From positions 213,218,001 through 213,282,000 of the forward strand of contig CM097882.1 of assembly GCA_044892505.1 (NCBI GenBank): DNA of 64,000 nt, in the 5' to 3' direction. Position 1 is the first letter of the stretch. The number at the start of each line of letters is the position of its first letter. Shown here piece after piece: positions 13,301-59,548 of this stretch. The stretch is from Schmidtea nova (Eukaryota). The translations under genes were made by a program, and so were the position numbers. Below the pieces are notes generated by a model. That model did no database searches. It was not told the DNA's origin and saw nothing but the letters and a program-made list of their open reading frames with translations.

Positions 13301-13746
13301 AATAAAATACAAATAGACACATTAAATGAACATAACAAAACCATGGGGTCAATGACTGTATAACAACAAAATAAAAATAAAAATAATTTCGTATTACCAT
13401 AGCAAGATTTAGATCAAAATGAACCGTTTTTAATAAATAGACTGAGACTTTTAATTGCCTAATTATGATTGTGAATACTTTCTCGTGTGATGTTGACCTT
13501 GTGGTATTTCGTTTGTTAGTTAGTTGTAGTTTTGGTAGTCGTGTTCGTTATTTAACTGGTTTTAGCTTCCGTATTTATACTGATTTAGCTCTCATGTTCA
13601 GCCAATCAGCTTTGATTCTAAACTTAATCCGTGGTAGGTTCAGGTTTTATTAATTTTGTTTATGTTTTTATTTTATCAGCATTTCCGACCAGCTGGATCA
13701 TAGTCTAAGTAATTGTCCAATTACTTATACTATTATGTTTGATTTA

Positions 13747-14366
13747 CAGGCATACCCCTATTAACGTCGTTAATTGGTTAAGGAGGCTAGTTATTATAAA
13801 AGAAAGAGAAAAAAAATTACAACACATGGATTTTAATTATTTCACATATAGGGTTGTACAGTGGGTCCCTACGAAAATGTAAATAATTTTTAAGCAAAAC
13901 TTTCATAGAAAAAATGTATATTTTCAAATATATAAAAAACAAATAAAAATAGTATGCATACAATCACATACATCGTGCATACGTATGTTTATAAATTCAT
14001 TTTATGCTCTAAAATAAAAATAAAAATTATATGTATACACTTTAAAAGTATACTTACTTGAACAAACAAATATACTTACTAGTGACAATAAAATATATAA
14101 AATTAAGCAAAATATATGGAACAGCTAGCTAAATCATTTATGCACAAACAATAATTAAAACAAAAACTTCAACAGTGGGAAGCTAATGAAAATTATGTAG
14201 AAAAACAAATTTTCAAATAACACCGCCTGCTTAGAATTATAGAAAAATGATTTAAACAACGTTACAGCGAAGCAACACGACGTTACAGTGGGGTATGATT
14301 ATAATGGTAGACTGACGTTACAGCGAAACAACTTTGCGCGAGGCAACGTTAGTCGGGGTATGACTG
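13747..14366. mobile_element. pogo/Tigger-type MITE
   Basis: TA|CAGGCATACCCC...GGGGTATGACTG|TA; TIR about 21 bp with 4 mismatches; subterminal CGTTACAG repeats. Confidence 0.75.
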
Positions 14367-15041
14367 TAGTTCTTATTTTTAGAGATTTTCCGAAATTTTT
14401 TCACTTTTTCCATTGTTCCCGGACGGTTTTATTTCTACATTAACTGGTAGTTTATTTTATTCTTTACTCTATTATTTATTAGTTAATTTTTGATTTTTTT
14501 GTTCTTAGCTGGGTTGGGTTGGGTCTTGAACTTATTATTTAATTTAATCTATTTAATTATTTTTTCTTAGGTTAATCGGTCATCCCAACATATATTATGA
14601 TTTTATTACCAATTTGGGAAAATAACTGGAAAAGTTGTGAGTTCCTAAAACATCCATTCATCAAAAAAGAAAACAAAAGCCATGGTGCAAACTTTAACAA
14701 CCAAATTTTAGTAATTTAGACTGGAAATTTAGAAAAACTGATGGGCGTTCTGATTGCCAAGATGGAGGATCTGTCCGTAGCTATTCCATTACAAGATACT
14801 ATTAATAACAGGGATTGACCTCAATGAAGTGCTGATAGATCATCTGCACAATTTAGATGATGTCAGAAATTTCACATTATCCGTTGGTCGCGCCCGCTCT
14901 TAAAATATTTTTAACAATTAATTAAGTAATAATTATTTGGGTGCTTGATCGCTGTGAGAGATTGTGGAGCGAGCCTGGAAGCCATAAAAACGGACTTATT
15001 GAAATCTATATAAATCTTATATGTTCGATAACGTCAATGTA

Positions 15042-15119
15042 CGCAAATATTTTGTTGCTCGCAAAAACCGGTATTGTAGAGGAATGACTAAACATTCAAA
15101 TGAATTCTGTCCTGAGCAT
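15042..15119 (+). pseudogene. TRMT13: TRM13 (tRNA m4X methyltransferase) N-terminal zinc-finger fragment
   Basis: RKYFVARKNRYCRGMTKHSNEFCPEH fits the C.Y.V.KKRFCR......FC.EH pattern; first Cys codon appears changed TGC>CGC. Isolated, stop soon after. Confidence 0.6.
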
Positions 15120-15647
15120 TCAATTGATCATCAATCAATATCAATCCAAACTCGATGAGATCTGTCGATTTGAATGCTGTAACAAGTTTCAGTTACCAGG
15201 TAACAAAGCGCAACCAGCAGTCAAATAGTTAAAGGAAATTTAGGGGATGAGACGGTCTGTGTGCGCAGTGGTGGTGTTTCATGGGTGTGCGCACACAGAG
15301 ACGAGTTACTGAAGTCGCTTAAAGGAATTGGATTTTTGACTTTTTAAAAGTTTATTAAAAAACATTTTGGACATTAATTGATTGGTTTTTTAATTGTGTG
15401 ATTTCGGGGACTTTAAATTGGATTTTGTTTTTTGGTATGAATGGTTTTATATTGAGCGAACTTTAAATTGGAAAAACTTTTAATTTATTTTCTTATGGAT
15501 TCTTGTTTTACTTATTCAATTAATGGATTTGGTTTGAAAATGTTTTGAAAGTTTTTAAAAGGGATTTGTTTTAAAGAGTTTAAAGAATGATGATATCGTG
15601 GAGATATTTGAATTAAATGATTTTGTAATGGACTTTTTTGGGATTTA

Positions 15648-16289
15648 GTGAAAGTTTCGGTCAAATTAATGGTTGATTATAATTATGTTATGAATGTTAA
15701 TGAGGAAATTCGAAATGATGAATTGAATGAATTCATAGTCGAAGTGGATATTACGTCTTCGTTTGGAGTTCAAGAGAAGATATTCAATGGTGGTGAGAGA
15801 ATGGTTGCATCAATTCAATGGCCAACTCTGATTGAAATAACGAATTCATTGAATCAAAATGTGTTGAAAGATAAAAACATATTAATGTATAAAGCGAACA
15901 AGAGTGATATTATATATGGCTTACGTAGAATAAATGTTCCCAATGAATATGTGCACCAAGTTGTAAAACGAACATTTTCTGTATTGAGTGATTATAGTCG
16001 TGAAATATATGTCTTATCGCGATTATCACCCAGCTGTTATCTGAAACAAGATCTCAATGATGATTTCCCGATAATTCGATGCTTATTTGTTGATCGAATT
16101 TCAAATTCGAACATAAAATTGCTTGAGCCACCAAATCTTTTGGTTGGATTACCGGCACAAATATTGACTTACTGTGCATCACACGGATTGAATGGAATTA
16201 TCAATGCTGTTTATTTTGTTATGGAAATGAATAAAAATTATTATATGGACGTTCAATCGATGATTTTCCATCCGTGCCTAAAATTGTGA
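15648..16289 (+). CDS. PSMG1: Chimeric intronless ORF with a proteasome assembly chaperone 1 fragment and a shared tail module
   Basis: FPIIRCL...KLLEPPNLLVGLPAQILTYC matches PSMG1 (P.LR.L...LLEQPNIV..LPAAVLSYC). Ends VYFVMEMNKNYYM, homologous to the tail of 33972-34679. First ATG at 15669. Confidence 0.65.
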   Translation: MKVSVKLMVDYNYVMNVNEEIRNDELNEFIVEVDITSSFGVQEKIFNGGERMVASIQWPTLIEITNSLNQNVLKDKNILMYKANKSDIIYGLRRINVPNEYVHQVVKRTFSVLSDYSREIYVLSRLSPSCYLKQDLNDDFPIIRCLFVDRISNSNIKLLEPPNLLVGLPAQILTYCASHGLNGIINAVYFVMEMNKNYYMDVQSMIFHPCLKL

Positions 16290-16679
16290 AAGTTACATCG
16301 ATAGGACGCAAAAATACCATAAATGGTTGTTCCAAAAGAAGTTGAAAGAATGTGATTTTTAATAATTGTAAATGTGTTATTTAATAAATGTTTTCATCAT
16401 TTATTTGTTTATTTGTCTTTGTTAAATATGTCTTTGTTTTTAAGACTTGTTTTTAGTATTGGTTCAATATGTTTTTTATTAGANNNNNNNNNNNNNNNNN
16501 NNNNNNNNNNNNNNNNNNNNNNNNNNNNNNNNNNNNNNNNNNNNNNNNNNNNNNNNNNNNNNNNNNNNNNNNNNNNNNNNNNNNNNNNNNNNNNNNNNNN
16601 NNNNNNNNNNNNNNNNNNNNNNNNNNNNNNNNNNNNNNNNNNNAAAATTAATAATTAAATCTTAATATTTTCATGATAG

Positions 16680-16949
16680 AAAAAGTGTTTACTAAATGTG
16701 CTCCATCTCCATTATCCCTGTGGAATAATCAATATATGGGAAATGTTGCACGAACAAAATCTGGATTTCCATGTCAAAAGTGGAAAACTAACTATCCAAA
16801 TTACATTTCACAAAAAATTAAAAGCCTAATGTCAACACAATATGACAAATTAGATCATAATTTTTGTAGATCTATTGGACTAGGTTATCCAGTTTGTATG
16901 AGAGATTATCCTGGAGGTGATTTTGAGTTTTGTGACATTCCAGTATGTA
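16680..16949 (+). CDS. Kringle-domain exon 1 (phase 1-1, 270 nt)
   Basis: Six Cys with YMGNVARTKSGFPCQKW, HNFCR and FCDIPVC; acceptor GATAG|, donor A|GTAAGT. Confidence 0.9.
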
Positions 16950-18277
16950 GTAAGTAGAAATTGTTTTCTTTTATAGAACTGTACATAAAATTATTTAAAA
17001 ACCGCAAAAAATAACACATCTTTCAAAAATTTTTATTACATAGATAATGAAAAAGTCCAGAATAAAACTTTATCTGTTTTTTTTCTTATTAAAAGAGCTA
17101 TAAATCACAATATTTTCAATATAACAGAAAATTTTGGCATTTCATTAGAAAAGAGCAGTGTCAAACATTCATGTTAAATTAAAAAGATTTTTGATTTATC
17201 GTGGAAGAATGAAAATAAACAAAATCATAAATAAAACATATAGAAGATGTGGTATATTTAAAATTAATTTTAGAATTTGTTTAAATCATTGAGTTGACAT
17301 GGTTTTCTATTTTACCTAATAATGACAGTAATTCGGTCGAAATAGATAAAACTTAAAATTATATTTTGATTGAAGTTTGTAATTAATTTAAGAACATAAT
17401 TTATTAGTGTGGTGAAAAATAATAAAGTTCCTTTTATGCCACATAACAAATTGTATTCGTTTTAATTCTGTAAAGTAAATTCCCCATAATGGATATAAGA
17501 CAACATTTTATTATTATTCATAGAAAATAAAAGTTTCTGTTGTTCAAGTAATTTCGTACTGTATTATGCATTTCAAGTCATTAGAAATTCTTAATAATAA
17601 AACTCCCAGGCCAGTACTTTTTGATTGGTTATTTATTTATACGGAATCATTCTATTTAAAGAAAGTAATTTAAAATAATCAATGAAGTATTATTATTTAT
17701 CAACAATATTGTCTCAGGTTATAAATGTACCATAATATACTACAGAATCAGCCAGCTCTCTATTTGTGCTGTTGATAGTTATGAGTATATGATTCCCCGG
17801 TGATTTTAATGTTAAAACTTTAAACGTTTGGTTTAAAAATGAACGTAATTATGTATCAACTGAAATAAAATGGCTAGACAGTCAAAATGTACTATATTCA
17901 ATTATTAGGAAATTTTAAAAGTTTTGTGACAAAAAATTACAATAATATTATTTTTACATCAATTATTTTATCAATTTAAATTTGTTTAATAAAACATTAA
18001 GAACCCAGAATAATTGTCACTCTATGAACACAATCTCAGTAATTTTTATTTACAAAGGATAAACCTGAAACTCAGCAAATTCTATTACTTTAGAAAAGAA
18101 TGTTTTGAAATTAATTCAATATAAGATAAATGAGATTGTTTAATTGTTTAAATCAAAATTATATTTTTATTAATTAGAAAACATCTTTTAACTGTTGAGA
18201 CATTATAATTAAATTTCAATATAAATAATTTAATATTTTTTATTCAACTAGATATTGTTAGCTAAGCTTTCATTTGA

Positions 18278-24486: not shown

Positions 24487-26179
24487 CAGTGGCGTAGCGA
24501 AGAGGGGGCAAAGGGGAAGAGCTGCCCGGGCCCACAGTCTTATGGGCTCCAGAAAGAGTCTGAGGATCATATATAATTAGTGTTATTTAATATTTATTCT
24601 CGACTTAACTTTTTCAAATCACGAAAACAATAACGTTGAAGATGACGCCAATAGATCTAGCTATAAGACTGGAGGACATAATGATGGTGATGAATATGAC
24701 CCCCGAAGTGGTATTCCTGCAGTTCTCTTGTTCAATGACATTGGTTACTTAAAATTCGACCAAAGGTCACAACTAGCAGTAGTGTTACGAAAAAACATCG
24801 CACTGAACTGATAACCTGTGGAGATTCAGTATTTCAATACGAAGAAGACCCGTTTACACTCAATGAAAACTTGGTTTTCCAAGCGCAAGAAAGCTACAAA
24901 AAGAAAGCTATACCGATCACTGTTAAGCGAGAATCTGAAACCGGATGGAGTGCTAGAGTGGAGGCCGTCAAAGCAATTTATGAGGGGTTACATGAACTAG
25001 TGAAACTGCTAGAGACACTATCAGATGATAGGAATCAGTCAAACGATACTGCAACTGGCGCAGAAAGGTTGCTAGCGAATAATTTGGAATTCAATTTTCT
25101 TGTGTTGCTGTATTTCTGGAATGACATCCTACGAAGAATTGATCTGGTTCAGAAACGTCTTCAGGATCCTACCATGAATTTCAAGGATGCAGTATCTGAT
25201 CTCAAAGCATTGGAAATTCAAGTTAACTTAACACACGATGATTTATGTGAGTGTGTAATTAAAAGTGCAAAGAATAGATGTGCAGAATGGGGCGTAGAAG
25301 TTCAACGCCGAATGAGGAGAAGACAAATGCCAGTAGAGTTGGCTCGAGATGCCAGGTTTTCTTCAGAAGAGGAAATTGCGCGTGTTCTAAAAAGTGTTAT
25401 ATATTGACTTCAACAAAAAATGGCAACTAGATTCATTCGTCTCAATGAGTTGGATTCAAAAATTGGATTTTTATTGGATGTTCGGATTCTGTTCAAGGGA
25501 ATGGATTTGACTTCTCTTCGCAAAGATTTCTTTGACCTTGCAAACTTTTATGACACTGACGTAAATGGGAGCGAACGTTTCAACGAAATTTGCGACTGTA
25601 AAATGTTGCTTACTACGAGAGGTAATGTTTTAACATCAACCCCTTTGGATCTAATTACTTTCATCGTGTCTTATGGGGACGATGCTTTTCCAAATTTGCA
25701 AATTGCTTTACAAATTCTCTTAACAGTTGCAGTGTCAATAGCCAGTTGTGAGCTTTCCTTCTGTAAGCTGAAGCTTATTCTTTCATATTTAAGAGCGTCG
25801 ATGGGACAAGATCATCTATGCGATCTCGCGGTTCTCAGTGTAGAGAAGGAAACACTGAAAAAGATAGACTTTGATGATATAATTGACAAATTTGTGAGTG
25901 TGAACGCAAGAAAAATGAATTTTGCCAGCATGAAGACTCTTTGAAAGGGCGGTTAAAATTTATTATATAGTTTATATTGTAATTGTGATAGATAATATTA
26001 TAATAAATATGGTTGTATAATAATTAAAATTTATTTAACTCTTATGCATGACAATTGAACTATTGGAGTTATTAATTCTGTCACCCAATTAATCTCCTAT
26101 CCCTATGTAACAAGTTTTGTGTAGGGGGCGCCAAATTTAAACCTTACCCTGGGTGCCACATAGTCTCGCTACGCCTCTG
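24487..26179 (+). mobile_element. Internally deleted hAT with a transposase C-terminal pseudogene (24871-25944)
   Basis: TIR CAG(T/A)GGCGTAGCGA; perfect 8-bp TSD GGTATTAA; ETGWSARVEAVKAI and AVSIASCELSFCKLKLILSYLRASMGQ. Confidence 0.92.
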
Positions 26180-26637: not shown

Positions 26638-27125
26638 TGTAGGAACATACAATAAACTAACGAATCGAATTCATAATATTTATTAACTAACAAATTGCTT
26701 GATGATTCTGTCGACGAAATATGTAATCGAGTTGTTGATAGGACTGTCGTTGAGGTTGACGGGATTACAGATATGAACGTTTTTGTCAATGTTTCAGAAA
26801 CAGTGTTTGTAGATAGTATTTCTACGTTTGAGTAAATTAACTTAGCAGTAGAACTAGTTGAAACGGCCTTTCGAAAAGTCGATTTTAATTCACTGGTGGA
26901 TATAGTTGATGATGTTTGAAAAAATGAGAATCCTGTTGAAGAAACTATCGTTTCTGGCTTCTTTTCGATAGAGAGAGAAATAAATGTTGAACTTATCATT
27001 TTTTGAATATCGAGAAAAAGAAGTCGATAAAGTGAATATTAAAACAATGCCATTTAAACTCTCATTCGAAAATTATTTAATAAGTTAATTAATTAAAAAA
27101 GAAATTTATAAACTAAGGCACTACA
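26638..27125 (-). mobile_element. Solo-LTR-like element, family A copy 1 (488 bp), with a Ser/Thr-rich ORF
   Basis: TGTAG...CTACA termini; perfect 5-bp TSD TAAAC; removal rejoins the Gypsy RNase H coding sequence; sense AATAAA about 40 nt from the 3' end; ORF from ATG 26999. Confidence 0.85.
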
Positions 27126-32725: not shown

Positions 32726-33971
32726 ATTTAACTTAAAATCTAATTTATATTTTAGATAAACTATAATACAAAATATCTGAAATGATTATATAAGTAGTCA
32801 AACAACGAAGGATAAAGCATATTTTTATTGTACTATATAATATAATCATAATATAGTAACCATTAGTTACTAATAAACAAAATGTTTATGGAAAATTTAG
32901 TTGTATTTATAGTATTTAATTTCCGTGATTCGTAATCATGCTAAAAAAAATTTCAAGTCAAAATTTCAATACTTTTTTGTTGATTGTTGGTAAACAAACA
33001 AATAAACAAAATGAAAAATAACAAGATTAATTTTGAGGATTACGCCAAAGTAGACATGGTTGACAATAACAGCCTTAGTAACATAGTTAAAGTTGTGTTG
33101 AATTGTCTAATATTGGTCTACGAATCGAAAAAAACAAACTTTACTTTCAGAACTTTGTGGAAACGTTTATTTATTTTTTAAGTTAATTTTTTAAAGAATT
33201 CCTGGAAATAAATTTATTGATATGAAATTAGTAACTTTTGAGTACGAAGTTGATTGTAAAATGATAATATTACATTTAAAATATTGTCTTTTTTGGTACT
33301 TTTCTTGAGCACCTGAGCAATGATTAAATTTGGTTTCAGATCTTTAATAATTTATAGGGTTTCATTACGAAGGCAATGTTTCGGTTTCAAATATTTTAGA
33401 AAAAAACAATGTTTTAAATAATTAATTTGAGTTTATGAAACGTCACGACTGAAGAAGTTTATTTCTTAAGGAATTCGTTTGGATCAGATCAAATAAACTC
33501 ATATCAATGATTGCTGATTGATTGTAATTCATAATTGCGATGAATGTTTTCATAAGATCTTCTCCGGGTAGCCAAAGGTTATCATCGAAGTGTTTAATAT
33601 TTCTCATAATTTCTTTTGAATGTTTGTCGACTGCATTTAGAGCAAAACTTGTCTGTAACCAATATAATAAGTGGTGATTTCTGGGTGTGCGCATTGTCTT
33701 TTTTATTGTCAGCGTCTGTGTGCGCATTGCTTTTTTTGGTTGTCAGCGTCTGTGTGCGCTCTTGTGATGAAGACAAGCTCGCGTCTGTGTGCGCTTTGGT
33801 AGGAAATAGTTTTATGGAAATTTAACTTGATTTTTTGATTTTTTTTCTAGAAGGGTTTTTGTTTAATTAATCGAGGCATTAGGAACAATGGAGTTTTTTG
33901 AATTGCTTTTTGATTTGAATAATTCAATGGAATTGGATTTTTTGGGAATTTAAAATTTGATTGAATGCGTT

Positions 33972-34679
33972 ATGATGATTGTTACATTGAGGGCTGTTCA
34001 ACAGAGATCTTTCGGTGTCGAAGTTGACGATGATGATGCGGTTTTGGCATTGAAAGAGAAAATTGAAAAATGTGAGGGCAAAATTATGGACGATGATAAA
34101 CTTTTAAAGGAATATAAATTAACGGAAAAACATTTCAAATCGACTCCTTGACTTCCAGTTTCAACAATTGCAACGATTGTAAATGAAGATAAAACATTTC
34201 TGATTCTTTATTACCGACATTTGTATGCTTATGGTTCCAATTCAATTTCATTTAAGGATGGACTTGCTTCTTATTATAATTATTTTCTACCTGAACAATG
34301 GCTGTGGCATATTATCGATGAATTCATTTACCAGTATCAATCATTTTGCCATCACCGTAACGAATTGGCATTCCGGCAAGATCTAAATGAGGAATTAGAG
34401 AAATCTGATTGGACTATTCGCGCAGTTTTGAATATTCTTTATTCATTTGGTGGAAAATCCAATATAAATCAGCAGATGCAGGCTTATGCAAGCAACGGAA
34501 GCAGCCACAACGAACTCTATCCTGATAAAATCCAAGCGTTTTCTGGCGGTAACGATGTCATAGTTCGATTTGACGATTGTCCCGAAGTCCTCTCGAAAGT
34601 CCATTTGAATGTTATTTATTTAGTTACGGAAACGAATAAAAATTATTATTTGGCCTTTCATTTGATGATTAAACAATAA
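33972..34679 (+). pseudogene. In-frame chimera of RAD23 UBL fragment, eIF3L fragment and shared tail, with one internal TGA
   Basis: MMIVTLRAVQQRSFGVEV...ALKEKIEK..GKIMDDDKLLKEYK (RAD23 UBL), then LTEKHFKSTP*...FLILY.YRHLYA...SYYNY.LPEQWLWHIIDEFIYQYQSF...VLNIL...KSNINQQ (eIF3L). ORFs 33957 and 34221 are in the same frame. Confidence 0.8.
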
Positions 34680-34899
34680 GTTTGGCTATCTGAGATGATT
34701 CTGTGTCAGGAGATTTCATTCTTGCAAAGAATTTTGAAGTTACCAAAATTGGTACAGAAAATTAAGGTTTGGAATGATAATTTATGTCTCCATCGATAAA
34801 ATTGAATCCTTTAGGAGAGGCATAAAGCCAGTGCTTGATTCCTTTTCAATATTACTTAACAATGTCTATATAAACTGATATTTATTGCACTATCTAAAC

Positions 34900-35150: not shown

Positions 35151-35249
35151 GTCTAAACCAGTGGAGAGCAACCCAAATACAAAAAATATAATTAAAACTA
35201 TTGAACATTAGGCGTACCATCAGAAAAAAACAAAAACCAAATGTGATAA

Positions 35250-36303
35250 AATTCTATGTGCTTTTAAAGAAGTCGTCTGATGAAATATTTCGTGATATGG
35301 AAATTGCATATGGCAACAAATGTCCTTCTAGATCCAAAATATATCGTTGATATCATTATTCAAGCATGGCCATGAAAGTGTTCACCAGGATTTTCCAATG
35401 TTGGCAGACCAACTGAAATTTCCGATAAAAAAATTACTCAATGTGAGGCGATTATTCGAGCTGAAAGACGAATTAAAGTGACTGAAATTGCAGAATTACC
35501 TAAAGTAAGTGTTGGTAATTGTCACAATATCATTAGGAAATTAGGCTATCGCAAATTATGCTCACGATTGGTTCCAAAGTTTCTGTATCCTGACAAGAAG
35601 GAAATGCGCCTCAACAACACATTATCAAATTTGCAACTGTTGAATTAGTATGATGATGCTTTTATTAATAATAGTGTTACTGAGGACGAGACATATCTTT
35701 CATTATACTTACCTGAAACCAAACGGGAACCATCTGAATTGAGACATGCAAAAGAAAGACCTCCTCTGAAGATGAGATGTGGAACCTCAAATCGAAAACA
35801 ACTGATGCTCTCAGTGTTTTGGGACAAAAGTGGAGTCATTCACCTAGACTAATGCAAAGTTACGGAAATCAAAAAATGTTCCACTTATGCTCCTTGCTGA
35901 TAATGCTCCTGTCCATGCAAGCAATGTTTCACGATATTCAACAAAAAAGAGTGGTTTTAGACTTCTCCAACACCCACCTTACAGCCCAGACCTTTCTCCG
36001 AGCGACTTCATTTTGTTCAAGCACCTGAAGAAAGCATTACGTGGACATCATTTTGAGACATCAGATGCACTCCAGCAATTTGTTGAACAGTGGTTTGCAC
36101 AGCTTCCTGGATATGTTTTGCTGATGCATTTCAAGATTTGGTTATTCGATGAAATAAGCTGGTTGCTGCCAATGGTAGTTATAAAGAAAAATAAGTAAAT
36201 ATATTTTTCGAACTAGTATTTGATGTAGTTTAATAAAAGCTGTTTCAGTTTTTTGTGTTGTGTTTCTTTCTTAGTTAGTCCGAGGTATTATTGAACGAAC
36301 TAC
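35250..36303 (+). mobile_element. Degenerate mariner, left TIR not found
   Basis: LVPK, DNAPVH and HPPYSPDLSPSDFILF motifs; right end resembles the TIR of the 22437 element. Confidence 0.8.
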
Positions 36304-44070: not shown

Positions 44071-46594
44071 CAGGGGCGGCCAACGTGAGGCCCGCGAAGA
44101 CTTTTTTAATGGCCCGCTTAACATTTTTGAATTTTCAAACATTTAACTTCAAACTGTATTTAATAATTTTTTTAATTTATTCTTATTTTTTGATAATACG
44201 TTCATGAAAAATAAATTAATTCCTATTTAAATTAAAAAATTTCAACAAAATTAAAAATAATAATGATTAAAAAAATAAAAGTTTCTCTCAACTGAATCAA
44301 AAATTAATCAATCGTAATATTTAAATTTTAAATAATCAAACTCTGTATAAAATGTTTTAGTTGTGGTTGATACTTTGACTGAAACATTTTAAAAATTATA
44401 AAACGTTTTGATCAAAAACATTATTGAAAAACTTGAAAAAGTGTACTAGTTCTAATCAGTCAAAATGCCCCAAAGTAAAATAATGACGGCAAAAAAGAAA
44501 AGAGAAAATGATTTGCTTTTGAGATGTTTTCAAGATCAATGGGAAGAACAATTCTTCTTTACACAAACAGTTTCATCAAAACCCATTTGTTTGATCTGCT
44601 CAGAAGTACTAGCAGTTGTAAAAAAATACAACGTGGAGCGACATTTTCAACAATGCCATAAAGAAATTAACTTTAAGTTTCCAATTGGATCAAGTTTGAG
44701 AAGTGAATTTATTTTAAAACAAAAAACTGCCCTGTCATTACAGAAGAACTTTTTTGTTAAAAAGAAAGAAGAAATGACCAAAATGATGACAGCATCTTTT
44801 CAAATTTCACTTCTGCTTGCACAGAAGAAGAGAAATTTCTCTGATGGAGAAATTGTAAAAGAGTGTTTGTCAATTTTTGCTGAAAACAGCGGACACAAGG
44901 GTTTGAGTTTACAAATTGAAAACATGGCACTTTCTCGAAATACAGTTATGATAAGAGTAGAAGACATGGCAAGTGATGTATCACAACAAATCATTCTTGC
45001 TTCGTCTCTTTCCAAATACCTCTCAATTGCAATTGATGAAAGCTGTGACAGGACTGACAATGCTCAATTACTTGTTTACATAAGATGTGTAAATGAAAAC
45101 TTTGACGTTGTGCAAGATCTTCTTGGTCTCTACCAGCTTCAAAAAACAACAAAAGGATCGGACATCTTTCAAGTATTAAAAGAGTGCATCGAGAGTTCTA
45201 CAAGTAACGGTCACAAGCTTGAATGGGACAAATTAGACAGCATTTGCACTGATGGAGCTCCAGCAATGGTGGGAAAAAATTCTGGTTGTGTTTCACTTCT
45301 GGAGAATTTCTTACAACGAAAACTATTTAAATACCATTGTATCATTCATCAAGAAATGCTCTGCACAAAGGACATGAAATTCAGCCATGTCATTGACACC
45401 GTTGTACACTGTGTAAATAAAATAAGAGCCCGTGCATTGCATCGAAGAGAGTTAAGGTCACTTTTTGAAAATGAAACCAATGAATATGGAGAACTTCTTC
45501 TACACTGCTCTGTTTGATGGCTTTCAAAGGGGAAAATGCTGGAGCGCTTTTTTCTACTAAAAGACCAATGTCTGCAATTTTTGGAGTCTAAAACCGAATT
45601 GCCAACAGAGTGTATCCAGTTAAAAAACAAATCTTGGGTGTGTGATCTTGCTTTTCTTGTTGATCTCACTAATTACTCGAATTGTCTCAACACTGGATTA
45701 CAAGGAGAAAATGCTTTATTTCCCACACTTTTCAATCAGATCAACTCTTTCAAAGCAAAACTGAAATTGTTTGCTAACAGCCTATCTCAGAAGAAAGTTG
45801 CTCTTTTTCCTACACTTCAAGGTTATCAACAGGAAAATAAATCTGATTTGGATTATGAGAAATACAAATCAGCCATCCTTGATTTGTCAAAATCATTTGA
45901 TTCAAGATTTACTGACTTTGAATCTGTCAAAAACAACCTACTCCTTTTCATCAATCCATTTTCAATATCTGAGATTGAAATTGATATTTATCCTCCTAAA
46001 ATCCAGTTAGAAATATCCGAAATTCAGAACCACTCAGGATTGAGAGTTAAATTCCAAGAGTTGTCTGGATCGCCAGTTTCTCCTGATCTGACAGCCTTCT
46101 GGAAAATAGTTCCCAAAAGTGATTTTCCAGAACTTCATGAAATCGCACTGAGATTTGTTTGCAAATTTGGAACAACTTATATTTGTGAAAAGACTTTTTT
46201 GACCATGAATTATGTGAAAAGTAAATACAGAACTACTTTGACAGATAAACACTTGGCCAACCTGTTATTACTATCAACAACAAAAATCAATCCTAACATT
46301 GAGAAACTAGTAAAGTCAATTCAAGTACAAAACCGCATTGACAAAATTGGTCAGAAATACGTTAGTAATAATTATCAAATTAAATATTTATGTTTTCACA
46401 TTTCATATTTGTATTTCTCTAATGTTATCATTCATAAATAAATTATATTGTATCTTAATTTGTTGATTTTATTGATTATTTTGTTGTAACATTTATAAAA
46501 AGTAATGGATATATTTTATAGATTTATGTTTTGGCTCGCCAAACTTTTTGGGTAAAAGTTTTTGCCCACTTGTGAAAAAGGTTGGCCACCCCTG
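44071..46594 (+). mobile_element. Full-length hAT of the Buster/Charlie group
   Basis: TIR CAGGGG(C/T)GGCCAAC; target copies TTCTAAAA / CTCTAAAC. Confidence 0.92.
44465..46344 (+). pseudogene. Buster/Charlie-type transposase with one in-frame stop and a probable terminal frameshift
   Basis: N-terminal CLIC...HF zinc finger, IDESCDRTD, CTDGAPAM, HCIIHQE, V*WLSKG (consensus RW), TYICEKTF. ORFs 44465 and 45536 are in frame. Confidence 0.92.
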
Positions 46595-55713: not shown

Positions 55714-55856
55714 TATATATATATATATATATATATTGAACTGATAAAAAGTAACTAAGTGATACTTAAAAGTTTTTATTCAATTTGAATAATGATGAAT
55801 GTCTTAATATAGAATATTAAAACAAATCATTATTAAATATATAACATTCTTCCCCT

Positions 55857-58628
55857 CTAGGTTAAGTATCGTGACGGTACTTTTACTTGTCTTCCAGATC
55901 GAGTAGTCGATTCGCTTCCTGCTGGTTCTGTTGACGACAAACTGTCTTCAAATGTAGTCTCGGAATGCCCGAACGTTTCTAGGGTGTCTTTCCCACTTTC
56001 AAGCTCTGTATCAGCTGAGCTATTTGAACATGGTGCAAGGTGACTCGTCGATACTGTGTCTGTCCTTCCATCTCTGTGTTGTACTCTTGCATAGTACGGC
56101 GATATTGTCTCGATCAGTTTGACCTCATCGACAAGTGGATCATTTTTATAGCGAATGTGTCGTTTTAGTAGGATGTTTTGATCAGTATTTCGTAGAAATT
56201 CTGGTAAATCATATCCAATTACGGACGCTCGATCAAATTTAAACATTCGATCGTGAGGTGTCGAATTAGTAGAGACGCACAGCAGTGATCTCATTGATGA
56301 AAGGGATACGTCCAATACTTTTTCCCAATGCTCCTTGGTCATATTGTTTTCCTTTAGGGCTAAGTTTATCGTTTTCAATAGAATTCCGTTAATTCTTTCG
56401 CATTGACCGTTACCTTGAGGATGATAAGGCGTTGTACGTGTTTTCGCCACTCCGTGTTTAATTAAAAAGTCATTGAATTGTCTGCTTTCGAATTGTGCTC
56501 CTCTGTCGCTATGTACGGACGAAGGTGAACCAAACAAGGTAAATAAACTGAACATGTGTTTTATTACGGTGTCAGAATCGACGTTAGCACAAGGAAAGGC
56601 AAAAGGGTACCTGGAATATTCGTCGACAACGACGAGCAAGAAACGATTAGATGTTGTGCTTTGTAGAGGTCCCACAAAGTCGATTGAAATTCTATCCCAG
56701 GGTTTCATTGATGAGATTAGGCTTCTACTTGGAGGTTTGAAGTATCTTGGTTTTATCTGTTTGCATGTTTCACAGTTTCCAATAACGTTTTTAATGTCTT
56801 GGATGGAGTATGGTAGATTCTTCGCTCGGCAGTAATGATACATACGAGTGATACCGGGATGACATAAATTTCCATGAAGTAACTTTAAAGAGTTAGAACT
56901 AATTATTGAACTACATCTAGATAATGCGTCAGCTGGTATGTTGTCGGGACCTGGTTTGTATTTTATGTTGAATCTCAGATCTGATAATTCAATTCTCCAT
57001 CGTGCGATCTTTTCATTCTTAGTTTTGGATAATTTTTGCCGATTGAATATTAACGAAACTGACTTCTGATCTGTAAGAATATTAAAGAAAGGTATCGAAT
57101 GTAAAAGGCTACGCCATTTTTGGGTACATTCGACGATTGCCGCGGCCTCTTTTTCAATGATGGAGTGATTCCTTTCTGACTTTGAGAGTAAACGAGAAAA
57201 GAATGCAATCGGTCGGCCGTTCTGACTCAATACTCCGCCCAATGCATGGTCGGATGCATCGGTTTCAATATCTTAAGGTTGATCTTGAGTTGGGGAATGT
57301 AGTGAAGCAGTTTGTAATTTGGTCTTCAGTAAATGTATTGTTTCGATGCATTCATTTGGCAGTGTGTTGCTTGACGTGAGTTCTTTACGAGAATCAGTTA
57401 GTATTCTCGTGTATTCTGAGCATCGTGGGATCCATTTTGCGTAATATGCAAAAAAACCTATTAAACGATCCATTTCTTTTGTAGACGCTGGAATTGGAAG
57501 GTCCACGAGAGCCTTGAAACGGTCCGGATCTGGCCTTATTGATTGGTTTTCAATTACGTGTCCTAGAAATGATATAGACGTTGTAGAAAACTTACTTTTG
57601 CTTTCGTTTATTTGTAGATTTTTTAATTTAGAGGCCTTTAGAAATTCTTTAAGGTTTTGATCGTGCTCTTCTTTATTTTTACCACCAATTATTATGTCGT
57701 CGAGATAAGCAAACGTTGACTGAAGATTGTGCTCTTGGATGAATTTGTCGATGATTCTCTGAAAAATTGGGACTGCGTTGGTGCAACCGAAAGGTAGTTT
57801 GGTAAATTCATATAATTTACCCTGTGCTTCGAAAGCAGTTAGTTGATAGTCTGATGGTTGTATTTGGACCTGACGATATGCTGACTTGAGCTCTACCTTA
57901 CCGAAAATTGTGTTCTTTGCTATTTTAAAGAGCAGATCGTCAATTCTAGGCATTGGGTATGAGTCAAGATTAGTGTACCAATTGATTGTATTTGAGTAAT
58001 CTATTACGAGCCGTTGTTTGCTGTTCTGGTTGATGGTGAAGCACTGTGCTCGCCAAGGACTTTGGCTTTCTTGAATGATTCTGTCGGAGAGGAGTCTCGA
58101 TATTTCTTGGCTGATAAACTATGAATTTTGTGAGGACCGTCGTGATGGCATAGCGATTGGTTTGATTTTACTTATGTCAACTCATGGCAAGAGCGGATAC
58201 GTGTCACATGTCATTGTCTTGAGAGCTAAAGATAGTGTGATCGGATGTCTATCGCCACCAAGTTCTAGATTAATTCTCGAGTGTCTTTTTAGGATGTCCA
58301 TTCCAATTATCACTTTAGTGACCAGTGATTTGGAGACTTGGAAATGTGCCTCGTAGACCTTGTTTGCCAACATTAACTTTCCATAGTAGGTACCTGAAGT
58401 TGAGGATATCGATTTATTCGCAAGGAGAACCTGTTTTACTTCTTTGTGATTAAAGGTTAGATTCTTACTATTGAGGAATTCTTCTGACACAAAGGACAAA
58501 TCTGATCCCGTATCAATTAATGCTCGAACTGAGTTTCCATCGAGAAAAGCCTCAACTAAAGAATTTTGGGCATTGATTGTTGCTAATCTAGAAATAGAGC
58601 AACTCTGAATCGGTCCGTCAACGTCCAT
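55857..58628 (-). pseudogene. pol (PR-RT-RNase H-IN), with stops and a frameshift
   Basis: LIDTGS, AYLDD, TDASD, HHCC zinc finger, IDFVG, HSDRG, ERIN; no chromodomain seen. Confidence 0.92.
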
Positions 58629-58638
58629 GTTTGTTTCT

Positions 58639-59342
58639 TCAGTAGAGATAGACGCTATTTTTTTTAGCTAAACATACCGGACTCCAGTGACTTTTCTTCT
58701 GGCATTTGTTGTAAGCAGAGTTTCTTGCTGGGCAACTAGATCGCGAATGTTTAGATTTACCACACCATTGGCAGCCAGTAGTCATTGCTGATGTTGTATA
58801 GAGTGATCTGTTTACAGTTGGCTCTGAATGCTGATCCTGTCGAAGATAGTTAGAATCTTTTATTGCAGATTCTAGAGACATCGCACGTGTAACCATGACT
58901 TGGAGGCTGACGTTTTCTAACTCCAAGAGTCTTTGTCGAATTTCATTTGAGCTAATTCCAAAGACTAATGCGTCGCTTATCATTAGATTATGATGTTCTT
59001 CTGCAGAGAGAGCTGGAGTTGGACACTTGTGAACTGCAACTGTGAGTCTTGTTGTAAAGTCTTCGATTGTTTCATTGTTCTGATCTTGAACCGCACGAGA
59101 GTTGATGAGGACCTTTTGACATGCCTTGCTATTAACTTTTGCATTGCTTCTTTGTAATCGCTGCAATGTTCCAAGGTGATGAAAATGTTTGATGGCACCA
59201 ATGAGAGAAGAGCTTCTAAACTGTCGTTGTCTGATAATGCCAGTCTTCTGATGTATGTCTCGAACACACGCTTCCATTGGAGAAATTCATTTTCAGAGGC
59301 ATTTTCCGGAAGAGCTTTTTGAAAGATTTTCAGATTCATCAT
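58639..59342 (-). pseudogene. gag, frameshifted
   Basis: WKRVFETY, EIRQRLLE and tandem zinc knuckles CQWCGKSKHSRSSC / KCQKKSHWSPVC. Confidence 0.85.
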
Positions 59343-59467
59343 TATTCAAATTGAATAAAATTGAACTGATAAAAAGTAACTAAGTGAAACTTAAAAGTTT
59401 TTATTCAATTTGAATAATGATGAATGTCTTAATATATAATATTAAAACAAATCATTATTAAATATAT

Positions 59468-59548
<81 letters not shown>

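Follow-up and report, generated by a model that had tools for sequence, protein, structure and literature searches.

We identified two related insertions with the ends of long terminal repeats (LTRs) in a stretch of 64,000 nucleotides of the Schmidtea nova genome (assembly GCA_044892505.1, contig CM097882.1, positions 213,218,001 to 213,282,000 of the forward strand; hereafter, the window, in which all positions are counted). The first, locus A, combines a spliced leader copy, the 5' piece of a TRM13 mRNA and a long frame related to PSMG1 (PAC1), and the second, locus B, combines pieces related to RAD23 and eIF3L with the end of the same PSMG1-like frame. An earlier reading made from the letters alone (the sequence-only reading) had described 14600-16330 as the second copy of a cassette with different cargo. 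Two related units with common ends and different host cargo are indeed present; however, the one at this position is a solo-LTR-like unit flanked by target-site duplications (TSDs), with limits at 14885 and 16270. The parts of locus A and its borders are as follows.

14880-14884, no strand: left TSD, TCCGT, the sole TCCGT followed by TG within 1600 bp upstream; the same 5-mer stands after the element at 16271-16275.
14885-16270, plus strand: locus A, a composite solo-LTR-like insertion of 1386 bp, TGGTCGCG...TTTTCCA, with TG..CA ends, a 5-bp TSD and no terminal inverted repeats (TIRs).
14885-14980, plus strand: retroelement 'head' before the spliced leader, with its TG start directly after the TSD; a similar GCGAGCCTGAA stretch lies right before the canonical leader in other contigs.
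14981-15023, plus strand: spliced leader copy (canonical length 42 nt, here 43), the final ATG of which is the start codon of the TRM13 frame.
15024-15250, plus strand: 5' piece of the mRNA of TRM13, a tRNA methyltransferase; the frame 15021-15158 encodes the CCCH zinc finger of the N-terminus before it stops.
15251-15305, plus strand: GTCTGTGTGCGC inverted repeat with 12-bp arms (15256-15267 and 15288-15299); position 15271 is the equivalent of the 5' end of locus B.
15306-15647, plus strand: G/T-rich leader-like spacer, in which the block 15437-15520 is common with 33795-33870 of locus B.
15648-16289, plus strand: PSMG1/PAC1-like frame of 213 codons, with the first ATG at 15669, open through the end of the unit at 16270 and stopping at 16287-16289 in flanking DNA.
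16203-16270, plus strand: shared 3' module (the tail), comprising the last 21 PSMG1-like codons, an AATAAA signal (16230-16235) and the CA end.
16271-16275, no strand: right TSD, TCCGT, the copy of 14880-14884.

The corresponding parts of locus B are fewer.

33672-34675, plus strand: locus B, a sibling solo-LTR-like unit of 1004 bp, TGGTGATTTC...TTAAACA, with the TSD ATAAG at 33667-33671 and 34676-34680.
33957-34151, plus strand: RAD23-type ubiquitin-like (UBL) piece, assigned by Pfam.
34152-34509, plus strand: eIF3L (Paf67) piece, assigned by Pfam.

Both units start with TGGT and finish in CA, giving the termini TGGTCGCG...TTTTCCA in A and TGGTGATT...TTAAACA in B, and both lie between perfect 5-bp TSDs (TCCGT at 14880-84 and 16271-75; ATAAG at 33667-71 and 34676-80), each 5-mer with its adjoining TG being found once only in the 1600 bp upstream. 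This combination of TG..CA ends and 5-bp TSDs is the hallmark of LTRs, which are inserted by an integrase. We found no TIRs linking the ends of either locus and no A-tract at 16270 or 34675. Thus, on their TG..CA ends and 5-bp TSDs, without TIRs or poly(A), A and B read as solo LTRs. Candidate signals of the unique 3', repeat and unique 5' (U3-R-U5) parts of an LTR are an AATAAA conserved 35 nt before the end of both units, within the PSMG1 homology, and 34-nt tandem repeats in the 5' part of B.

The two loci are homologous over the whole of B. The last 1000 bp of A (15271-16270) are the counterpart of the entire locus B, first base to last, in an alignment that starts at TGGTGGTG.. in A and TGGTGATT.. 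in B and closes on ...GATGATT(TTC/AAA)CA. The core GTGTGCGC, which the sequence-only reading had proposed to be shared by two units, has seven matches in the window against 0.1 expected, all confined to 15259-15296 and 33685-33794. In A, the GTCTGTGTGCGC motif occurs once together with an inverted copy, so as to form a hairpin with a 12-bp stem (15256-15299), and in the 5' part of B (33685-33800) a unit of about 34 nt with GTCTGTGTGCGC at its end is present in three to four tandem copies. The GTGTGCGC hairpin corresponds to no known RNA: a search of Rfam with the whole window at gathering scores, and with 14300-16483 at E <= 10, returned nothing relevant. At the other end, the tails are 84% identical over 63 nt (16203-16265 versus 34608-34670), and searches of the window for further copies with seven sub-pieces (tblastn and blastn) found the tail of locus B and nothing else. 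In A and B alike, the frame is still open at the final base of the unit, with the same phase in each, and the flanks supply the stops (at 16287-16289 and 34677-34679, respectively). One frame of B joins the UBL piece, the eIF3L piece, 33 codons of unassigned origin and the PSMG1 tail, with a single in-frame stop at 34149-34151. The open frame of A had been described as a PSMG1 segment followed by the shared tail; the tail is common with B as stated, but it is no separate segment, since by sequence comparison it is the C-terminal 21 codons of the PSMG1-like frame itself, overlapping the putative cis-acting end of the LTR.

The extra 386 bp by which A exceeds B on the 5' side consist of the head (14885-14980), the spliced leader (14981-15023) and then 227 nt of TRM13 up to 15250. 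We compared this region with public contigs from four runs. The 3' part of the leader is identical at 34 of 34 nt to the form found on extremely deep contigs, which diverge into many sequences after the ATG at 15023 (agreement about 0.48), and its first 9 nt are unlike the contig form, ...GCCGTTAG. The leader at 14981-15023 probably corresponds to the Schmidtea SL1 reported by Zayas et al. (2005). Contigs with a head-like GCGAGCCTGAA stretch and the canonical leader have loose ends before 14990, and the combination of head plus leader recurs in other contigs. The zinc finger downstream of the leader had been proposed from the letters as of TRM13 type, and the frame 15021-15158 indeed matches zf-TRM13_CCCH in Pfam above the cut-off (E 8e-8). 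Because the spliced leader is joined to the TRM13 ATG, the template of this piece would have been a mature trans-spliced mRNA. Contigs break at 15250/15253, at the joint of the TRM13 piece and the GTCTGTGTGCGC hairpin; other contigs are near-identical to the TRM13 piece except for a 6-nt ATCAAT insertion behind 15133, and since these are 20-50x deeper than the single-copy flank, the leader-TRM13 segment probably exists in many near-identical copies.

The frame 15648-16289 was assigned to PSMG1 by three approaches. A profile check had been set beforehand for PSMG1 and TRM13, and both matched above the Pfam cut-offs, PAC1/PSMG1 (PF16094) being borderline with 28.9 bits against a cut-off of 28.4. 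A phmmer search of 1.8 billion proteins returned four proteins that align with residues 51-205 of the 213 (E 7e-8 to 4e-5, 28-31% identity), and the three of these four that were scanned with Pfam (P0001, P0004 and P0005) are clear PAC1 members. The matches of this exhaustive HMMER search were distant PSMG1 relatives and one repeat protein only, and no planarian parent or sibling of the frame was among them. Furthermore, the top 11 PDB matches of the predicted fold are without exception chains from human proteasome-assembly intermediates, PSMG1 itself accounting for six (template-modelling (TM) score 0.52-0.58 over about 200 columns), for a model that is of low confidence (predicted local distance difference test (pLDDT) 55, predicted TM score (pTM) 0.60) and was built on a shallow alignment. 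A word-index protein search with the frame gave no match, a look-up of its exact product no record, and a metagenome scan for its relatives none.

The stop-free run around the frame extends over 222 codons, and because the maximum in 300 shuffles was 147, a run this long is not due to chance. Compared with the PSMG1 relatives, the frame is short of the acidic N-terminus and of 35-45 residues at the other end, finishing 8 residues past the last aligned block; it is not complete, with the conserved C-terminal region of PSMG1 missing. As far as the alignments and the structural model allow, it is a near-complete PSMG1 copy, predicted to span almost the whole PAC1 fold, and not a fragment, as the sequence-only reading had it, although the PSMG1 assignment of the open 213-codon frame was borne out by Pfam, phmmer and fold. 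The proposed echo between its N-terminus (FIVEVD...QEKI) and the RAD23 piece (FGVEVD...KEKI) was not substantiated: BLASTP gave no alignment at E <= 100, and the stretch aligns with the N-terminal strand of PSMG1. Of the differences that set this copy apart from the commoner versions, the 17 with the best support comprise four synonymous and 13 non-synonymous ones, which equals the neutral expectation of 0.237. With this neutral substitution pattern, the copy bears no sign of constraint, and the one at locus A is probably an inert relic.

In each run, 625-1538 contigs match the locus A stretch at 85-100% identity, with many variant positions; with two units in 64 kb and many non-identical contig copies, the family is multi-copy and dispersed. 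Summed contig depth rises about 8-fold from the bin 15443-15539 onward and is highest on the tail and on 15443-15539. Ahead of 16153 and of 16203, other contigs carry different sequences, including one similar to the piece before the tail in B; further cargo variants with the same tail therefore exist. We dropped the notion, raised by the huge leader depth, that the runs are RNA-seq: the single-copy junction contigs have uniform depths per run (about 45, 8, 4 and 4), which suggests DNA coverage, and no sign of expression was seen.

The insertion site of locus A lies in a repeat of about 290 bp, which we denote F.

14728-14884, plus strand: left half of host repeat F, at multi-copy depth; contigs have loose ends ahead of 14728 and joints leading to 16285-16342.
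16276-16405, plus strand: right half of host repeat F; contigs join 14860-14862 to it, and 16394 to 14728 across 17 intervening letters.

Since contigs in up to four runs, at the depth of the single-copy junction contigs, link 14860-14862 directly to 16285-16342, copies of the surrounding repeat without A exist. The contig joint from 16394 back to 14728 suggests tandem F units elsewhere. In the reconstructed insertion site without A, a single F frame of about 58 codons runs unbroken across the site, as judged by script inspection only. Other copies of F carry CTGATGAG-containing stretches at 14772-14779; a hammerhead ribozyme was considered for these and rejected, the order of motifs being unfit and Rfam finding none.

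Locus A was inserted by an integrase-type reaction, the ends of the two units are conserved while the host-derived content between them varies, and RNA was the source of the TRM13 piece at least. We interpret locus A, with a probability of about 0.65, as the solo LTR (or a comparable LTR-type terminus) of an LTR-retroelement family that has many copies in this flatworm, inserted into a copy of F by an integrase. Several points weigh against this interpretation. Within the 64-kb window, we found no full-length element of the A/B family with paired LTRs, a primer-binding site (PBS), a polypurine tract (PPT) and gag-pol, so that the label 'LTR' for A and B depends on their ends and TSDs. Outside the ends, A and B are less than 65% alike; the 5' terminus of locus A could be either of two nested positions, 14885 or 15271, and the origin proposed below for its 386-bp extension is a guess. 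The identity of the leader is putative, being drawn from its likeness to the published sequence and from the behaviour of the contigs. The library type of the four runs is unrecorded, and contig depth is therefore a measure of neither copy number nor expression. Finally, 'intron-free' here means uninterrupted profile matches, the parent PSMG1, TRM13, RAD23 and eIF3L genes of the species being outside the comparison.

The same structures could have arisen in other ways. A and B are both solitary, with no family interior nearby in the window, and the unit has its own poly(A) signal and long frame as well as repeats that resemble a promoter, as would be expected if it were a complete small non-autonomous retroelement of about 1 kb (5' terminus, leader, frame and tail) mobilised by the enzymes of an autonomous LTR element. 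This is unlikely, however: LTR-type reverse transcription requires a PBS and a PPT as well as repeated R ends, none of which is visible in a single 1-kb unit. The stacked intron-free mRNA pieces, one of which begins exactly at a spliced leader and thus at an RNA 5' end, would also fit chimeric processed retrocopies made by a reverse transcriptase of the long interspersed nuclear element (LINE) or Penelope type hopping between RNAs, in the manner of the U6-L1 and tripartite chimeras of mammals, with the TG..CA ends and 5-bp repeats produced by chance. Such retrocopies would carry a 3' poly(A), which is absent from both units, and TSDs of variable and usually greater length, whereas those found here are exactly 5 bp at both loci, at positions set independently by the A/B homology; moreover, the same 3' end recurs in A, B and many contigs, pointing to an amplified element and not to independent retropositions, and we regard this origin as quite improbable.

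A long open frame over nearly the whole PAC1 fold, with no second PSMG1 seen in the window, could also suggest a genuine single-exon host PSMG1 gene, or a young gene family, of which B would be a decayed chimeric duplicate. We give this explanation very little weight, because between the two TSDs the frame never reaches a stop codon, and the conserved 35-45 residues at the C-terminus of PSMG1 are missing; many copies of it occur that are not identical, its substitutions follow a neutral pattern, and it is itself part of an insertion in a repeat. Conserved ends around a variable content of gene fragments are a feature that recalls Pack-type DNA transposons carrying genomic gene fragments; with TG..CA ends and no TIRs in either A or B, and with intron-free cargo of which one piece bears a spliced leader and hence points to an RNA source, such an origin is scarcely credible.

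If A and B are LTRs, both ends of the unit would have been retained for functions in cis: the integrase sites, the GTCTGTGTGCGC repeats in the U3-like part, and AATAAA with a short U5-like end. The middle would tolerate foreign sequence, its older content in this family being a near-complete intron-free PSMG1 with a frame open to the last base of the LTR. Given that nearly all of the PAC1 fold is covered by the PSMG1-like frame, with the tail as its C-terminal end, this frame looks like the original, resident content of the family and the RAD23/eIF3L unit like a derivative. In B, most of the PSMG1 frame would have been swapped, in frame, for the RAD23-UBL and eIF3L mRNA pieces, with the last 21 PSMG1 codons kept, and A would have gained the head, the spliced leader and the 5' piece of the TRM13 mRNA on its 5' side. 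The two nested 5' termini of A may reflect a shifted U3 boundary or a recombinant of a head-type and a PSMG1-type LTR. The pieces most likely entered through a reverse transcriptase switching templates between the element RNA and co-packaged host mRNAs. The repeated capture suggested by the sequence-only reading thus holds in part: the intron-free pieces and the one spliced leader support an RNA-mediated origin of the cargo, but PSMG1 looks resident.

We propose template switching for A and B on the precedent of Bs1, BARE-2 and Veju (PMC13317346) and of the maize LTR elements, 425 of which contain gene fragments (PMC2774510). In the maize LTR retroelement Bs1, three host-gene transductions form a hybrid open reading frame (PMC13317346). 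As in Bs1, we find an LTR-type element with intron-free pieces of several unrelated host genes, joined in one fused frame and amplified together; unlike in Bs1, where the pieces are internal, they lie here inside the LTR, with a frame open to the last LTR base, in a flatworm host and with one trans-spliced leader. Foreign sequence entered the LTR or the terminal-repeat retrotransposon in miniature (TRIM) of BARE-2 and Veju through aberrant template switching (PMC13317346). There, too, new sequence lies within the LTR and both LTR ends are kept, giving sub-families that differ in LTR content, but the insertions are other transposons or unknown DNA, and here they are coding pieces of host mRNAs. 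In parasitic flatworms, partial or whole spliced leaders have been reported in LTR and LINE loci and set aside as by-products (PMC12582326). Those loci resemble locus A in having leader sequence embedded in flatworm retroelement copies; in A, by contrast, the leader stands between a recurring head and the beginning of a host mRNA that can be identified. The ta-TRIM solo LTRs of Echinococcus have short TSDs, demonstrated by comparison with insertion-free sites (PMC4558846). In both flatworms, solo LTRs with short TSDs were thus compared with insertion-free sites, and unlike A and B, the LTRs of ta-TRIM are short, non-coding and without host gene content.

Capture of host genes by LTR retroelements is thus already known; what is described here is captured sequence inside the LTR, and in an animal. 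Such capture of gene pieces is well documented in plants and barely in animals, and the sequence captured here forms long in-frame chimeras of housekeeping genes within an LTR, one with a trans-spliced leader that marks its origin from mRNA. A protein-coding frame in a retroviral LTR is represented by sag of mouse mammary tumour virus (MMTV), which lies within U3 and has its own stop. The units described here likewise have a long open reading frame within the LTR; unlike sag, this frame derives from a host gene (PSMG1), runs through the poly(A) signal and reaches no stop before the LTR end, and its translation is putative. Should the size and variety of the family match what the contigs suggest, planarians would be a natural setting in which to study the recombination of host mRNAs by reverse transcriptases and the spread of exon-shuffled frames. 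In annotation, such units could be mistaken for PSMG1, RAD23, eIF3L or TRM13 genes, or for spliced-leader RNA genes.

A bolder possibility, which we hold to be decidedly unlikely, is that the frame inside the LTR has a function for the element. Translation from the 5' LTR would read on into the leader and gag, so that the capsid would gain a host-derived N-terminal module, either the PSMG1 fold or RAD23-UBL plus eIF3L, and the leader copy in the LTR head would provide a universal homology for jumps from trans-spliced host mRNAs back to the element, that is, a leader-guided capture. If so, the fact that swapped cargo is always joined in frame would follow from selection for an uninterrupted frame, and the modules in the capsid would all be linked to the proteasome or PCI complexes. 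A proteasome or PCI theme had been noticed among the cargoes; with four cargoes it cannot be judged, and TRM13 does not fit it.

The window as a whole is AT-rich (GC 22-39%) and crowded with transposon remains. Upstream of F, a Tc1/mariner-like miniature inverted-repeat transposable element (MITE) of about 623 bp (13747-14369), with 23-nt inverted ends (CAGGCATACCCC...), lies next to TA and is missing from other copies of the surrounding repeat (contig joint from 13746 to 14370). The FLKHPFIK stretch near 14645, which had been taken for a possible kinase-like tail, has no Pfam or PDB match and is located in low-depth unique DNA outside the element. Further along the window, hAT transposase remnants with a dimerisation domain and a Spin-doc-type zinc finger occupy 24871-25944 and 44465-46441 (plus strand). 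A TG..CA unit (TGTAG...CTACA) at 26638-27125, with a minus-strand frame of 133 codons, is inserted in retroelement RNase H-like sequence and has no similarity to A or B. Near locus B, the frame 35201-35350 (plus strand) resembles, by eye, the N-terminus of a mariner-type transposase. An LTR-type interior at 55735-59472 (minus strand), with reverse transcriptase, RNase H and integrase in three broken frames, is bounded by direct repeats of 113 nt, 98% alike, and has no relation to the PSMG1 family. Beyond the end of locus A (16270), there is an assembly gap at 16484-16643, and just past it an open frame (16673-16957, plus strand) contains a Kringle domain (Pfam, E 2e-10) and is probably an exon of a host gene.

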